From Cyanophora paradoxa CCMP329 (lineage: Eukaryota; Plantae; Glaucophyta): a stretch of 64,000 nt of DNA. The stretch spans positions 62,001-126,000 of the forward strand of contig QPMI01000428.1 of NCBI GenBank assembly GCA_004431415.1, in the 5' to 3' direction. The notes below the pieces were generated by a model. It made no database searches, was not told the origin of the DNA, and saw only the letters and a list, made by a program, of their open reading frames with translations. Positions 19,666 to 28,392 of the stretch are shown piece by piece. Numbering within the stretch: the first letter of the stretch is position 1; each line of letters starts with the position of its first letter. The translations under genes and the position numbers were made by a program.

Positions 19666-20609
19666 GCCCAGTCCCCCCCCCCTCTCCTTGACTCAGTGAT
19701 CTTCTTCGGCGCCCTGCCGAATGTACTTTGCGCGCCTGCTTTCGTTGCTATCGATCAGTATGCTCGCTTCATTCAATGATTTTATAGCTATGTCACAGTG
19801 TATAGTTCTTTCAAGTTCGTCGTCTGCTCCTCGCTCTGCTGTTAGCTCGATCTCGTCGTCTAGATCTGTTCGTGCTGCTGCCTCGTCTCTTGTCCCTATG
19901 TCTGCTACGTCTAGCCTAGTAGTGCGAAGAGTACTGCTTTGTCTTTGAACTCTGGATCTAGATCTTCGACTGCAGTTCCTCGTGCTCGCTCTCCTTTTAT
20001 ATAATTATTTACTGCCCAGCCAAGCTGCGCATGCGTCTCCGTGCTCCTCGTCGTTCTCGAGTCTCAGAGTCTAGTGCTCCGCGTCGTTCTAGTGTCACTG
20101 CTGCGTCCTTGAGCTCTTTTACTACTTCGCCTCGTTCGCACTAGCTATCTTGTTCCTTATCGTGATCTTGCTATGGCTATACTATGATGATGATAGCTAG
20201 GACATGCGCTAACAAATCGACATGTACAGGGGCAGTGTAGATATAAATTAAACAGGGCCGCGGCTCTCAGAGTCTGATCATGAGCGAGGAGGCGCTGAGC
20301 AGTGCTGGCAGAATATGTAGCGGAGCCGAGGGAGTTCGAAGCAGGGAGGGGGGCCGGGGATGGGAGGGAAGAGTATGAATTCGAACGGAACAGGGACACT
20401 GCAGTTGCACTGCCCCTGTTGGAGGGGAAGGACCTCTAAAGGTTGAGCAGGAAAGTTCACCCCTGCAGCTGGTCACGTTAGCTTTGAGCCGAGATAGTGT
20501 GGACTCTGATAGCAGCTCGCCGAGTCGCGATCGGTGCTTTGTTCAGAAGCGGGGGAGGACGAGATCTAGCTCGTGATCGCGATCAAGAAGAGACTTGAGA
20601 GAAGCATGC

Positions 20610-21070
20610 GAGCCGCGCCGCCCCCGAACGCGCCTCCGCCCTGCCCGTCCGACGGTCGAGACGCGCCGCCACCCGCCGCGCCTCCGCCCCGCCCGGATAG
20701 CCGCTCCGCCGCCCGCAGCGCCTCCCGCCCCGCCCGGCGAGCTGCGCCGCCGCCCGCCGCGCCTCCGCCCCGCCCGCGGCCGGATAGCCGCTCCGCCGCC
20801 CGCAGCGCCTCCCGCGCGCCCCGCCCGGCGAGCTGCGCCGCCGCCCGCCGCGCCTCCGCCCCGCTTGGCGAGCCGCGCCGCCACCCGCCGCGCCTCCGCC
20901 CGCCCGGCGAGCTGCGCATGCGCCGCCGCCCGCCGCGCCTCCACCCCGCCCGGCGAGCTGCGCCGCCGCCCGCCGCGCCTCCGCCCCGCTTGGCGAGCCG
21001 TGCCGCCGCCCGCCGCGCCTCCGCCCGCCCGGCGAGCCGCGCCGCCGCCCGCCGCGCCTCCGCCCCCGAG
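20610..21070. repeat. GC-rich degenerate minisatellite
   Basis: More than 10 copies of GCCGCCCGCCGCGCCTCCGCCC-like units with GGCGAGC(T/C)GC linkers. Confidence 0.8.
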
Positions 21071-22940
21071 GAGCGGGAGGAGCCCGGCGGCCGCGCCGCC
21101 GCGCCAGTCCTCGACGCTCGCAGCCTGGCAGCGCGCTGGTATTCCCGAGTCAGGAAAGGCGGCGCCGCGGCCCCGTACGCGTGCCCCCCGGAGCGCCTTC
21201 TGCCGCACTGCGGCAGGGAGCCCAATGTGGGCCAGGTGCGCGGAAATCAGAATTAAATTATTAATCGTGGGCAATGTGTAATCGGAATTGAATAGAGCTT
21301 CTGAAAGTTCGGCGCTCGTCAGTTCCGAACTTCCGAATAGAAAATAGAAATTAAAATTCACGCTCGTCAGGCGGCCGTCGGATCGACGTCGACGCGTGCT
21401 TGCTCTTCCTGCAACCGCATGCGGGAGGAATTCGAACGCGTACGCATATATATATATCCTCCTTTGGGCCAAAGCTGCGGCAACCGTTGCGTGGTATCGG
21501 TGCGCCGGCAGACACAGAAGAATGGTGCGCCGGCGCGCGAAAATCTCTCCTGGGCGCGAAAATCGCCCTGCAGCTCAGCGGCTGGGCACCCGATCGACCG
21601 TAAAAGCGCAGGCTTCGCGTGCACCATGCCGCAAGAGGCGGGCCGGGCCGTGCGGCGATGGATGCTAGCACTGTACTACTTATAATTAGTAAGTTACTAC
21701 TAGCTGCAATCTAATTTGAAGCCATAATTATTGCAAGGGGGGAAGGATTCCCCCTTGCTTCCCGTTCCCTCGCTTCAGCCAAAAATTGCAAGGGGGGACG
21801 AAGACCGAAGGGCTTCTCCCATGCAGCTTGCTTACCGTTCCCTCGCTTCAGCCAAAATGTTTCTATGAGGCCGTTTTCGAGGTCCAGTATGCAACACCGG
21901 AAAAAATGATTCGTTATTCGCGATCCGATTGGCTCGGTGGACCGGTCAGCCCTCGACTTTCGACCGTCAAAGTCGAGGGCCCGGGGGGAAAAGTGGTTTT
22001 CGAGGGGAAAACGAACTTCTCCTCACTCCGGCCGGTCTTCGAATTTCTTGCGCGGTTATAATTATGCATGGAACCAGTTCTCCCTAGCTGTCTCCTCTAG
22101 ATTTCCGCTTCCTCGCTGCTGCAGTGCGCCGCGTACGCCGCACGGTACCCGTGCCGCCTGGACTACTTTTCTCTGCATCAAGCTTGCATCGCAGCACTGC
22201 GCATGCGTACCGAGCACGTGCCGCTGCCCGCAGCCGAGCACGCTTTGTGGCACTCGTGCTTGAGCTTGCCCTGCAAAACCGGTTGCACCGCTGCCTAGCT
22301 GCGTCGCTGATCGATATCGCAGCCGAGCACGCCGGGCCGTCCAGACCGTGCTCTCTTGCTGCGTTCAGTACGTCTCCGAAATCGAGTTTATACTGCAGAT
22401 TCGCGTGCGCCGCTGCCCGCAGCCGAACACGCCGGCCCGGCCGTGGACTGGCCGCGGTGCTTGTTTCCTGCTAGCAGCTTCGCCAAATTGCGCGCGTGAT
22501 TTTCCTGCTGACCAAGTCCGCACCAGATGGGACGGCGATCTAGTTCTGCAGCCGCGTCTGTGCCTGGAGACCTCGTCCTGGGGCGGGACTTCGTGGCGGG
22601 TGTTTCAAATATAAACCCAGTAAAATTCACGTCAATACAATACATGTTGGAATCACATCCAATACTCTTGAAAAAATGGGCGCAGGCTGCACGGTGTCGT
22701 CATCATGCAACGGCGGAACTTGCTTACATTGTCCGGACGGAGCCCGTGAACACTTCTGCTGGCGCCAGAACTTGTTTCGTCATGTCCGGCAGCACGGTCG
22801 CAGCGCTCGAGTTCGTGCAGTTTCGATCGAGCCGCGCGTTGGCAAAAACGCATGCGCAGCGGCTAACGCACGTATTCACCGCCACGCAGGGCACTCCCAA
22901 CCCGGTAATGCGTGCACAGCCTTCAGTTGGCGATACTCGA

Positions 22941-23297
22941 TTTTTTTTTTTGCAAAAGTGGACGTCGCATTGATACACCACGGCACATGTATCAATGTTC
23001 TACGTGACGTGCCCTTCCGACCGGTCATCTGTCTAGCCGAAGACGCTAGCAAGGTGCCGGCCATGGGTCGCTCAATATGGGAGGTTCGCCTGAGTGGGGG
23101 AGCCATGGTTTTCGGTGATAGCCGTAACCAGGCCCGCGCGCCCACCCCTTGATCTACTCCTCCATCCCTCATGAGCCCTGGAAGTGAAATGTCTCGCAGT
23201 CCGCCGCCCTCCCTTGCCGCCGCTCCGCCACCCCTCCTCCTCCTCACTCTGCCTCCTCCCTCCTCCTCACCTGCGCCCCAGGACCCCGATTAATCGG
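22941..23297 (-). mobile_element. 5'-truncated non-LTR retroposon (LINE 3' end or SINE)
   Basis: Poly(A)11 tail (T11 at 22941-22951). Perfect 19-bp TSD TTCAGTTGGCGATACTCGA at 22922-22940 and 23298-23316. 3' stem-loop CATTGATACA...TGTATCAATG. Confidence 0.9.
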
Positions 23298-23746
23298 TTC
23301 AGTTGGCGATACTCGAAGCGCGCGTTTGTGTGTCCAAGTGAGCTGGTTTCGCGGCTTCTTTACAAATTTGAAATTTTCGAATTCAAGAGTTATTCAGAGT
23401 TTTTTTCAGAATCCGGACCGGGAGTCATCTGCAGGCGAAGACCAGAGAAGTCTTCCCACAGGCTTTTCGTTGCTTGTTCCCCTGGCGGTACCTTGTCGTT
23501 GATTGGTATGCATATCCCGGCCGCATTGACGTGCACGCTCAGCCTGGACCGTTTCAACTGCCGTACGCTGAGCGGAACATTCGAGCAGTGCCGGCCCGCG
23601 AAACCGGCAATCAGGTCCATGCTTTGCCGGCATCGCCGTCCGCAGTGCGTAATGAATCTCAAGAGACTTCTTTTTATTGCTGAAGTGCTGAGCAGGAACT
23701 TTCTTCGAAGCGCGTCCCCTGCAATGGAAGATCAGCTAATTGTGTA

Positions 23747-24781
23747 TTGTCTTCGAACGAAAATGATCTCAATCACGCTGAGCATTGCCCCGACTTCCGC
23801 ATTCCGAATTCTGAATCGCGAACTCATGCTCCCAATTCCGGCGACACCGAATGCGTATCCCGCGAAATTGAGCCCGTGACGCATGCCGCTTCTGACAACT
23901 CGGTTTCGGGCGATGTGCGAATAGCGGAACCGTCTGTGAGCCGGGAAGTGCAACGGCTTTCTTTCCAACATCCCGGCCCGCGTTGGAGATCGGTGCGCGG
24001 TGTGGCGCCTTGTCCTTAGTGCTATTTCTCAGTGCGTTCGCATCAGATGTCGTGCAGCACCTGCAAGCGGCTCTTCAGCGAGAAGTCCTCGTTCGAGAAG
24101 CACGTGAAGCGTGCGAAGTGCTCGCTGCAGACTGTACCTACCGACATGTCTCTTCCGGCATCGGCAACGGTCGGCCAGTACCCGTGTAGGCAGTGCTCTA
24201 CCGTCTGTCCGTCGGCTCCTTCCCTTCGCCAGCACGAGGCTGCACACGCTTCGCGACGGCGCAGAAGAATAAGAAGACCGCCGCAGGAGGCGCCACTCCG
24301 CGCCCTCGCCGCTACCGTCCCGGTGCGCATACTTTCGCAATTCCTGGTCGGCAAAATTCAAACGCGCCGTGCTCCTCATGCAGGGACGGTTGCGCTGCGC
24401 GAAATTCGCAAGTATCAGAAGACTACGAACCTCCTGATCCGGAAGATGCCATTCCAACGTCTCGTTCGCGAGATCGCTGCAAAGGTTGCGGAGCAGAAGA
24501 AATTCCAGAGCCACGCGCTGCTCGCTCTGCAGGTTTGCGTGTCTGGAGCTTGTTTCACGGGTCGAGTCCTTCATTGACTCTGAGCGCAGGAAGCTGCTGA
24601 GGCTTATCTCGTCTGGATGTTTGAGGACGCCAACCTCTGCGCCATCCACGCCAAGCGGTGGATTTTCTTTGTGTTGCGTCTCGTCGCCCGCCGTCTGATC
24701 TGAAATGCGCATTCTCGCAGCGTCACGCTGCAAGCAAAGGACATTCAGCTCGCCCGCCGGATCCGCGGCGAGCGAGACTGA
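23747..24781 (+). CDS. Histone H3 variant with an N-terminal extension carrying two C2H2-type zinc fingers (one apparent 1-nt frameshift near 24250; start uncertain)
   Basis: Spliced histone fold RRYRPG|[31 protein letters not shown]...[10 protein letters not shown]|[23 protein letters not shown]|[23 protein letters not shown] introns at 24323-24383, 24533-24589 and 24658-24720. Upstream lie CSTCKRLF...KHVKRAKC and YPCRQC...LRQHEAAH, with a candidate in-phase intron at 23993-24046. Confidence 0.85.
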
Positions 24782-26345
24782 ACCCTTTCTCTTCAATACG
24801 CTCACGGACGTGTTCCGATGTGAATAATTCGCGCATGTGCTGTCTGTGTGCACGAAATCGCAGCTGCAGAACCTATCTTCGAGCTGCTGCAATTATCGCA
24901 AGCACGGGTCATTCAGGGCTGGGCTCGGGAAACGAGGTATGGGCCTCTATTTTAAGTTCCAGGGATCTCGGCTTTTAGTCGTGCACTTCAGGCATGGTTG
25001 CGGGCTTGCTGTCTTTTCTGTCTATCTTCTATCTTCCACGCTCTGTCTTCAGCACTCTTTCTTCTAGTTCTTTCTGTCGTCAGCGCTCTGTCCCCTTTCG
25101 TGTCCTCTTCTGATATATTCTAACGTCACCTATTCGGATCATGCGAAGGTTGCTGTCGATAGCTCTCTGCCCCAAATATACCATGCATTTTAATTTCTTG
25201 TTTCAATCAGGAAACAAATGGCCATGGGGGTGTCCGTAGTCTAGGCTCTGTGCTGCCGCCCCTGTGCGCCGAGTTCGTGAGCGGCCCGGCGACGGCCCCT
25301 CGGCGGCGGGCGGCCCGCACCCTCGATCTTCGCCTCAACCTAGCGCTGACAGAAGGGCCGCCGTTGCGCTCCGGCCTCCCCCGCCGCTAGGGCGCGTGGC
25401 GCTGCAGCCCCGGCCGCCCCCGCCTCGAGGGCGCCGCGAGTCGGGCTCCGGATCCCTCAGCCCGCCGCGCCGTTTATCTTTACACTTCACCCTCCCGCGC
25501 GCACTGGGCCGGGGTCGATCTGCCGCACGCATGTGCGTCCCACTACGACTCTTTCATTAGATCCCGGTTCCCCCCTTGCCCCCCCGGCGCGACAAACGCG
25601 GCCGGGCCACTAGTAAACCTGCCAACTTCTGGGCCAAGTTGGCAACAGTAAGTTACTACGTACTGCAATTTCATGGCATGGAAATTGAAAGCCATCAACC
25701 GTTGACCTGATCAAATTCGATTCGCTTCGAATTCAAGCTTAAGGCTTCGATATTTTCGCACGTGCACTGCAGCAAATCTTAATGTCGCCTCCCGCAGGAA
25801 TCTGGATCTCCCGGAGTCCTGCGTAACCCATATGCATGGCCATTCCGGCCTCGCCCCCACCAGCTGCAACCGTCGTCCTCGGCCCGGCTCCTCCAGTCAC
25901 GCCCCCTAGGCCTACTGCCCCGCCGATCGCGAACACTGCTTCTAGATCTGCAGGGGCACGGCGTCGGACCGGACTGCTACCCCAGCGGTCATGATCACCG
26001 GGTGACTCGGTGAGTGCACGTGAAATCGAGCGCACGCCGCGACGCGCGCGAGTCGGATGGCTCGCGCAGGCTGCAGCTGTGCGAACTCGCCGGACATCGG
26101 ACCCGCCCTATAGCTAGACCTCTCGATCGCGCGCAGCTGCAGGATCTGCTGCGCCTTGCCTGGATAGCAGTACTCGCTATATATATATTGCGGCGCAGGC
26201 TGCTGTGCATGCAGTACGCCAATTGCAATTGCAATCGGGGGGGGGGGGGGGGGGGGGGGGGGGCTGGAGGCTGGGCTTTAAAATTGAAGGCGGCGCAAAC
26301 AGATCAAGATCAGGCCGGCGCTGGGAGCGCGTCGACGTCGGAAGC

Positions 26346-28392
26346 TTAAGCCGCTGAGCTGCAGTCGACGCCCTCGTCGAGCTCGGTGCCCTTACGCGAA
26401 TTTCGAACGTCAACGACTTCGGCTCAGGTCCGACGGTCCGCTCCTGGTTCGGCATGCGCAGGGGTCTCAAAGGTTTTCTGGCCCATTTAAGTTTGGATAA
26501 AAAAGAATAACTTGCACTATAGCTACCTATGGATAAAAGAATAACTTGCACTATAGCTACCTATGCATGCGCATATGGGGCTTATATCACGGTAATGGAT
26601 AAAAGAATAACTTGCACTATAGCTACCTATGCATGCGCATATGGGGCTTATGAGCTGGCCCCGCCGAAATCGCGACGAAAATTCCGAAATCGAAAGCTGC
26701 ATACAAACTACTTGATAAGGTTTACTTTATTCTTGTGAGCTCCGCGGCCCGGCGGCCCCAGTTGAGCGAATGCCGCAGTGCGAAGATGCGATTGCGATAT
26801 CGATTGCTGCAATTGGCTAGTACAAGCCAACTATGGCAGCCGCCAGGAAGCCGACCCATGCCGCAAGCACGAACTGCAGCTGAGCGGTACCGGTGTGAAG
26901 CTCTGAATTCAGGGAAATAGGCACGAGGTCTAATTGTATAATTTGAATTCTAGATCTTATGGGCCAGCACGTGCACGCGTACATACCGCGGTGCTCGTGG
27001 GCATGGCGAGAAGGCCGGGGGACGCGGATGATGGCCAGTAGGGCACCGAAGCGACTGTCGGGCGCCACACAAAGGCCTGCGCGCACATCTGATTAAATTT
27101 TTTAAAGGTGTAAATCGATGCTTGCTCGAGTTCTGACCATGACCATTATAAATCCATAAAACAGCGTTTGCTAGTGCTCGATTTGCGAGCATCCGCCTTG
27201 AAATATTAATTGCAATTATATTGTCGCGGACGTTTTGGAGGATGAGGCGGGCGAAGGACGGCGTAGGATTGGCCGACTCGATTACGAGGCTGTAGGAGAC
27301 GCCCTCGGTGTACTGCTTCAGCTGCCGGTCGCCGCCTGGGCGCCGCCCCTGGCTGTTCTGGCGGGCCGAATTGATGCCGGGCACGCCTGCAAGAATAGCG
27401 CCATCAGCCCTAAGCCCTAATAATTTAAAAGCCCCTCGATTTCGATATATCAAGAGACCGTTGGGGGTGCTCTAACTATAGCCTAGTTGAGTTCAGAGCT
27501 CTGAGTTCAGTGCACGCACGGAACTGGATCTCTGTCGAGCTCGTGATGCGCGCATCGACGGCCTCTGTCAGCGTCCCGTCGGCAGCCTGGATGTAAATTC
27601 GGATCGGCTCCCCCACCTAACAAATTTAAAGCACGACATGGATGTCATGGTCAGGTGTACTGTTAATCTTGCGAAGGTTTTAGTAACTGGACAATAAACA
27701 GGAATGTCGCGCACTGGGAAACCGGTCCCAATGACAGATACGAGGTTTCCACCCTCCTGGTCGTGAAGTGCGTGCGTCAGAAATATTTCCGAATACAATT
27801 GCAACAATCGCAGAGTCCGAAATAATTATTATGCGCGAAAATTCAAAAAATCTAGAAGAGCGTCGACGTCAGCGTCCGAGTGCGCATGCAAGCACCGTGG
27901 AAGCCTGAACGACCGGGGCGGGAAGAACGAGCCGGAGGCTGCCGTCCGCGTCTCGGACGACGCTACCCCCCTTCACGTCAACCTGTTTAATTTAACGCCA
28001 CCATCAATATGTGAGTCGGACTCCATGGACCACGATCACATGAGATCATGATTGATATTATTGTCTTTAGACCCGAAAACCGAAACGCACCACAATACCC
28101 GCAATACTCAAGGAAGACGCCAACGGGGGCTGCGAATATAATTTGGAGAATCAGGCGCAATTGCAATCAATCGTCCGACGGTCATCATATTTCAATGTTA
28201 ATGATATTTATTATCGACCAGCTGAAGAGCATGTGCACCAGAGGAGTTGGTGACGGAGGCAGTGCAGTCGGCTCAGGATCCGATGCCGGCGTGGCCGCGG
28301 CCGTGGGCGAGGGGTCGGCGGAGAGTGGCGACTGGCTCGGGCTGGGGCTGGGGCTGGGGCTGGCGACTGGAATTGGGCTGGAGCTCGGGCTG

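Follow-up and report, generated by a model that had tools for sequence, protein, structure and literature searches.

Does the locus at 24047-24781 of the Cyanophora paradoxa window (the whole stretch of DNA analyzed here, 64 kb in length) encode a histone H3 in which zinc fingers have taken the place of the N-terminal tail, or have parts of two genes come to lie side by side there? An H3 fold and two C2H2-type fingers on the same strand genuinely adjoin at this locus. The initial annotation, made from the sequence alone, had read them as a zinc finger-H3 chimera and proposed a nucleosome subunit with a recognition module of its own. We somewhat favor a different explanation, in which a recent rearrangement placed an orphan H3 variant, in a copy truncated at its 5' end, downstream of a zinc-finger gene fragment, the resulting chimera being most likely no working finger-histone, or not yet one. 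All features given below are on the plus strand unless stated otherwise.

Anatomy of the locus and its published gene model

The stretch 24265-24781 holds a histone fold of the H3 type that is intact, contains three GT-AG introns and is preceded by a partial H3-like tail, and the exons, introns and Pfam Histone scores bear out what the initial annotation had described. The tail remnant (24250-24322) corresponds to H3 residues ~20-43, with only 24265-24322 forming annotated exon 2, and is followed by a 61-nt intron (24323-24383; GTGCGC...TGCAG), which is in phase 1 and interrupts the G44 codon. Exon 3 (24384-24532; Pfam Histone 50 bits) encodes alpha-N, alpha-1, loop 1 (AKVAEQKK for QDFKTDLR) and the start of alpha-2. 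After a 57-nt GT-AG intron (24533-24589; GTTTGC...CGCAG), exon 4 (24590-24657; Pfam Histone 27.8 bits) encodes the remaining alpha-2 and loop 2, and a 63-nt GT-AG intron (24658-24720; GTGGAT...CGCAG) separates it from the last H3 exon (24721-24781), which ends in a TGA stop codon (24779-24781). The exons were searched one by one, and for the spliced protein the query was the database entry P0002, whose score of 136.9 bits against a cut-off of 26.4 places it in the Histone family (PF00125). On the upstream side the H3 frame is closed by a TAG at 24187-24189, and no ATG occurs from this TAG to the fold, as had been stated. In the 64-kb window, tblastn found no other H3 or finger copies. An antisense ORF of 287 codons (24029-24892, minus strand) covers the whole locus including the introns; neither its 286-aa translation nor any of nine neighboring ORFs had a Pfam match, and long bidirectional ORFs are numerous in the C. 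paradoxa genome (PMC6704402).

The two fingers, which had been placed directly upstream and one base out of frame with the fold, were found there at 24053-24121 and 24179-24247, in the frame of a 181-aa ORF that is open from 24032 to 24577. Finger 1 has the pattern C-x2-C-x3-F-x5-F-x2-H-x5-C (i.e., C-x2-C-x12-H-x5-C), which is the C2HC form of a classical finger with Cys rather than His as the last ligand. Finger 2 has the full classical C2H2 pattern, Y-x-C-x2-C-x12-H-x3-H, with a Cys at the usual place of the core Phe. The two-finger genomic stretch scores above the Pfam thresholds for both zf-C2H2 (PF00096; 26.2 vs. 25.2 bits) and zf-C2H2_4 (PF13894; 28.1 vs. 27 bits), the best stretches being residues 2-21 and residues 45-67, respectively, of the 68-aa piece. 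A phmmer search with this piece among 1.84 billion representatives returned generic multi-C2H2 proteins only, some with the same final Cys, and found no finger paralog as a protein; a word-based search returned P0002 alone. Fingers that end in Cys like finger 1 are also present in P0131 and P0123.

The locus has already been annotated as tig00020603_g11748.t1, which encodes P0002 (152 aa; EukProt EP00741_Cyanophora_paradoxa_P012160), and its five annotated exons, when joined, translate exactly to this protein. Annotated exon 1 (24047-24169) begins with the ATG, runs over 41 codons to ...PASAT and contains finger 1 and a 16-aa linker. It is followed by a 95-nt GT..AG interval (24170-24264; GTCGGC...GGCGCAG) that is annotated as an intron, was missed in the first reading of the sequence and contains the whole of finger 2 as well as the breakpoint described below; exon 2 begins with KNKKTAAGG at 24265. 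In the annotated splice finger 2 is removed and the H3 rump tail follows finger 1 without a shift of frame; as finger 2 is intronic, P0002 has one finger only. The public model is therefore indeed a finger-H3 chimera, but the claim that both fingers are carried on the histone found no support. Between 24104 and 24289, 28 different GT..AG pairs join the ORF that starts at ATG-24047 to the fold in frame and without a stop, and none of them (0/28) keeps finger 2 intact. With 28 such pairs an in-frame rescue is nearly certain by chance, and the annotated model is thus weak, non-independent evidence.

The gene models of C. paradoxa are BRAKER1/Augustus predictions that, according to their authors, need manual curation (PMC6704402). 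The gene identifier is absent from the supplement text of Price et al. (2019), and the contig identifier had no match in the literature. The sites of the 95-nt interval resemble those of the RNA-proven introns of a minus-strand neighbor (donors GTCCGC and GTATGT; acceptors GCGCAG and GCTCAG), and the mean intron of this genome is 86 bp (PMC6704402).

In the Pfam search of the spliced model P0002, the Histone score is high, and finger 1 alone, with its C2HC spacing, reaches 14.6 bits with zf-C2H2 (E = 0.049), which is under the cut-off. In an AlphaFold2 model of P0002 (34 sequences; mean pLDDT 52), residues 1-51 have pLDDT values below 50 and the finger is unfolded, which is a weak result given that the model contained no zinc and the alignment was shallow. 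Lone classical zinc fingers seldom bind DNA.

The junction at 24249/24250 and the copies of its two sides

The finger side of the locus has copies elsewhere in the genome. The block 24080-24249 is ~98% identical to an expressed paralog represented by the RNA contigs X1 record 8, which covers 24088-24249, and X2 record 13, which covers 24080-24249, and the match runs unbroken through the donor at 24170. In X1 and X2, these are the only contigs that match the locus. They differ from the window at three positions (T24112C and C24175G, both synonymous, and G24130T, which changes Q to H), and beyond 24249 they run on for 27 and 173 nt, respectively, with sequence unlike that of the window. Given that the match is confined to 24080-24249, includes three differences and gives way to unrelated sequence, the RNA contigs are attributed to the paralog and not to the locus itself. 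DNA contigs of X4 depart from the window at the same base, 24249, with yet another continuation, and carry T24119C, which changes the last Cys of finger 1 to Arg. It follows from these matches and continuations that the finger block is one member of a small family, that at least one of the other members is transcribed from elsewhere in the genome, and that the homology to this family ends at 24249. The continuations of the paralogs past 24249 are absent from the entire 64-kb window, and an H3 element inserted in a finger gene that resumes downstream was rejected for this reason.

The H3-like coding sequence begins exactly at this breakpoint, at ~codon 20. When aligned without gaps to H3 residues 20-39, codons 24250-24309 have a BLOSUM62 score of 26 with six identities (A21, T22, K27, A31, G33, and P38), a score that is reached by 0.25% of composition-preserving shuffles (p = 0.0025). 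The 19 codons upstream of 24250 score -17 against H3 residues 1-19, with 0 identities. Finger-gene sequence and H3-derived sequence thus meet between 24249 and 24250, where the join is one base out of frame.

The initial annotation had supposed that one base was missing near 24250, the restoration of which would fuse the fingers to the fold. This was contradicted by the short-read contigs, in which no indel was found over 21800-27700, and there is no homopolymer at the join. We consider it hardly credible that the junction or its frame shift is an artefact of long-read assembly. The assembly is PacBio-based (PMC6704402) and no single short-read contig is displayed across 24249/24250, but the assembly was also Illumina-corrected (PMC6704402) and the short-read contigs of the 2012 runs match the window here. 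Furthermore, the X3 contigs have a depth of 13.7 at 24112-24175, the same as their mean over the whole bin 24164-24360, which suggests that an X3 short-read contig, not listed as a single bridging piece, covers the join.

The H3 side also has a second version. X4 DNA contigs (record 25) contain a version of 24346-24634 that is ~2% diverged and has a similar depth; of its six differences, the two in exon 3 are synonymous, and another three fall within the 57-nt intron (24533-24589). As the C. paradoxa genome is considered to be haploid (PMC6704402), this version is probably a paralogous copy, and it may be either the parent of the H3 part or a second copy of the chimera.

The locus is situated in a patch of 57-59% GC that is flanked by blocks of 63-77% GC. 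High-copy repeats flank it at 21800-22193, 22785-23375, and 25543-25739, where the depth in the X3 DNA contigs is ~40 to 170 times that of single-copy sequence. The element at 22785-23375, at ~100-fold or more single-copy depth in X3, contains the direct repeats TTCAGTTGGCGATACTCGA at 22923 and 23297. Some DNA contigs omit the 891 nt from 22916 to 23806 and have 9 other letters in their place, which suggests that copies of the element differ by an insertion. One X4 DNA contig joins 22197 to 25558 and omits 3360 nt (22198-25557, with 33 other letters between). Because both flanks of this joint are high-copy repeats, a repeat family may enclose the whole finger-H3 segment, either within one of its members or between them; the joint itself is weak, since its shorter side is only 28 nt. 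Farther away, a GC-rich unit of 40 nt (GCGAGCCGCGCCGCC...CCGCCCG) occurs eleven times in tandem at 20608-21071, a run of ~27 G is found at 26238-26264, and near this run, at 26529-26651, lies a perfect 57-nt direct repeat whose copies are 66 nt apart.

The H3 variant, its expression and the origin of the chimera

Canonical H3/H3.3 and the H3 part of the locus share 74-80% identity. Of the 96 positions from RYRPG to the C-terminus, 19 differ from the plant/protist-type H3.3. Eight of these changes are consecutive and make up the replacement of loop 1 (no K79; R83K), while the 11 others are S57T, E59N, L65M, V89L, G102W, L103M, T107A, I119L, M120Q, P121A, and A135D; the changes in the fold are mostly conservative or within loop 1. 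The other two reading frames, as judged by eye, show no likeness to QDFKTDLR, and a compensated frameshift behind the eight loop-1 changes was rejected accordingly. All of the 47 columns that are invariant in the 34-sequence alignment are kept, nearly all of them in the H3 part, including C110, H113, and RRIRGE. D123, L126, and I130, which together with C110 and H113 we take to be residues of the four-helix bundle, are likewise retained, as are arginines that presumably contact DNA. Because the invariant columns and the key residues are kept, the H3 part looks, from its sequence, like a nucleosomal H3 variant that has been under purifying selection for a long time and not like a decaying one. 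The initial annotation was also correct in stating that the marks of the canonical N-terminal tail are missing: an ARTKQTARKS tail with K4, K9, and K27 was not found, ARKS motifs are absent, and K36 and K37 are replaced.

Among 5.8 billion proteins, no relative closer than canonical H3 was found, and neither was an ortholog, a paralog or a parent of the variant. P0002 forms a singleton cluster, and in searches over proteins of 84-317 aa it was the only one found with the finger-H3 architecture. It should be noted that P0180, a 133-aa H3 from sea-water metagenome contigs (L001:916-1317; also L002 and L003), has the tail sequence GKNKKTTAAGG, which is much like the KNKKTAAGG found here. P0180 is encoded amid densely packed genes without Pfam matches, and it may come from a virus or from a small eukaryote. 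Despite the likeness of its tail, P0180 is overall no closer to the variant than the others are and was rejected as its relative.

X2 was confirmed to be truly RNA by a spliced contig over 26817-27290. This neighboring minus-strand gene is transcribed and spliced in X2, with introns at 26880-26986 and 27076-27230, and the pieces of its ORF have no Pfam match. At the locus, neither X1 nor X2 contained an RNA contig on the H3 exons, across 23376-24079 or over 24250-25345, and no RNA contig in either set carried the splice joint 24169-24265. In 15 further runs guessed to be RNA, next to none of 99 sampled words of the locus occurred (share 0.00), and no contig encoding P0002 is on record. Because contigs drop rare transcripts, these results stand for low or no expression in the sampled conditions and not for absence of expression.

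According to the explanation that we prefer, an orphan, lineage-specific H3 variant would have evolved under constraint, and one copy of it would have lost codons 1 to ~19 at the breakpoint. In a repeat-rich, lower-GC patch of the C. paradoxa genome, this truncated copy would then have landed downstream of, and in a different frame from, the first ~68 codons of a C2H2 gene with two fingers and with transcribed paralogs elsewhere. The event appears to be recent, as the finger block is only ~2% diverged from its paralogs, and a recent event would explain why nothing has decayed. A histone-containing protein would result only if the 95-nt stretch, which still encodes finger 2, left as an intron, and the spliced product would consist of one C2HC finger, the 16-aa linker, a 20-aa rump tail and the complete H3 fold. 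The chimera would be young and, in the data examined, silent or very weakly expressed. Several observations count against such a joining of fragments: the H3 fold and its three introns are intact, with an ATG exon on the same strand 95 nt before them; the 95-nt interval is ordinary for C. paradoxa in both length and splice sites; BRAKER may have been given RNA-seq hints; contig-level RNA misses rare or condition-specific transcripts; and the similar depth and ~2% divergence of the second H3 copy could mean that the whole chimera was duplicated and maintained.

That the annotated model is right and functional is, in our view, unlikely. The 152-aa protein would carry a C2HC finger in place of H3 residues ~1-24, pair with H4 and enter nucleosomes, and the finger together with the basic rump tail would provide local recognition of DNA or protein in the absence of K4, K9, ARKS-27, and K36. 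P0002 is public and translates exactly from its exons, the 95-nt intron is unremarkable in its splice sites and its length, both exon differences from the second copy are synonymous, and the fold retains its DNA-contact arginines, the five residues named above and every invariant column. These points have to be set against a join that is out of frame and recent, the absence of an RNA contig for the junction or the H3 exons, 28 alternative in-frame introns, the lack of any ortholog or paralog with the same architecture, the loss of finger 2, the 14.6-bit score of the lone finger, and an AlphaFold model, made without zinc and from a shallow alignment, in which the finger is not folded. A finger-H3 protein made at all, through the cryptic 95-nt intron, is a prediction that we regard as rather doubtful. 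As a candidate for a working nucleosomal histone it is improbable, and so is the scheme of a nucleosomal H3 with a C2HC finger for the first third of its tail, in which the locus would yield either a two-finger non-histone or a finger-histone, depending on how the 95-nt interval is used. The nucleosome subunit with its own recognition module that had been proposed initially is weakened by the evidence for a recent, out-of-frame breakpoint in the DNA, and no RNA contig in X1 or X2 supports its expression.

Two other explanations separate the fingers from the histone or set the annotated splice aside. There is a slim chance that the H3 variant works and receives its start codon from another 5' exon, with the fingers belonging to a short gene of their own, to an upstream ORF or to a fragment that is dead. 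This would fit a fold that is well kept though ~20% diverged from canonical H3, an acceptor at 24264 that is open to any upstream donor, and an unannotated, low-copy stretch at 23376-24046. However, no candidate exon was found, no RNA contig lies across 23376-24079 or 24250-25345, and the H3-like codons extend upstream of the acceptor to 24250, which suggests that a continuous exon was lost rather than that an old intron ended there. Even less probable is a finger protein produced from the locus. With the 95 nt kept and the 61-nt intron spliced, it would contain both fingers and an Arg-rich, out-of-frame tail that ends at an early stop, without the fold; with both intervals kept (ORF 24032-24577), it would contain both fingers and, joined to them through a linker of 45 aa, the fold from G44 onward. 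The RNA of the paralog does retain the finger-2 region as exon, the ORF is open and the two fingers are jointly above the Pfam thresholds. Yet no RNA contig comes from the locus itself, the fold-less product has a premature stop upstream of two introns, and the fold-bearing product requires that an ordinary GT-AG intron be kept and is without the RYRPG/alpha-N entry segment. The suggestion in the initial annotation that retention of the 61-nt intron joins the fingers to the fold therefore holds for the existence of the ORF, but the retention is absent from the RNA contigs. None of these alternatives is as probable to us as a recent joining of a truncated H3 copy to a finger-gene fragment.

Comparison with known histone variants and chimeric genes

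Should the fusion protein be produced and assembled, it would stand as the first core H3 to possess its own zinc-finger module. Consistent with the initial statement that no characterized C2H2-H3 fusion was known, none was found in the literature examined, including a survey of chromatin evolution. Such a protein would provide a natural test of a nucleosome without most tail marks. It would unite a core histone and a recognition module in one chain, be devoid of the K4, K9, ARKS-27, K36, and K79 sites, and have been caught at its birth from a join of fragments. It should be noted, by way of caution, that the Augustus model found an open frame where 28 alternatives exist. The more modest value of the locus is that of a dated example of histone-gene rewiring in which the breakpoint is mapped to the base.

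Like canonical and replacement H3 (H3.3-like, plant/protist type), the variant possesses all of the H3 stretches compared (55 + 13 letters), and, like replacement H3 genes, its gene has introns. It differs from canonical H3 in being without residues 1-19, the ARKS motifs and an ATG of its own, in the replacement of K36 and K37 and in a loop 1 that is wholly replaced. With CenH3/CENP-A it shares the state of an H3 paralog with a non-canonical N-terminus and an altered loop 1. The fold identity of CenH3 to H3 is roughly 50-60%, whereas that of the variant is ~80%, and its loop 1 is of canonical length and its alpha-2 almost canonical. A CenH3 identity was rejected on these grounds, in agreement with the initial view that the variant is not a typical CENH3, and the variant is not filed as CenH3.

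The likeness to macroH2A, in which a core histone is joined to a small folded module, is one of principle and depends on the annotated model being real. MacroH2A, an H2A whose macro domain is placed at the C-terminus, is conserved and proven in chromatin, while the module here is a single N-terminal zinc finger on H3 that is unconserved and putative. As in Arabidopsis H3.15 and H3.10, the H3 fold is kept and the K27 context is lost, such that the variant would escape Polycomb-type marking; H3.15 and H3.10, however, retain the ARTKQ start and full-length tails, whereas the variant here lacks the first third of the tail. Drosophila jingwei is a young chimeric gene built from joined gene fragments. 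In contrast to chimeras of this type, the join at this locus shifts the frame and depends on a cryptic intron, and the chimera is known from the gene alone; what it shares with them is a recent junction between a 5' piece and a body, and a parent copy that is still expressed.
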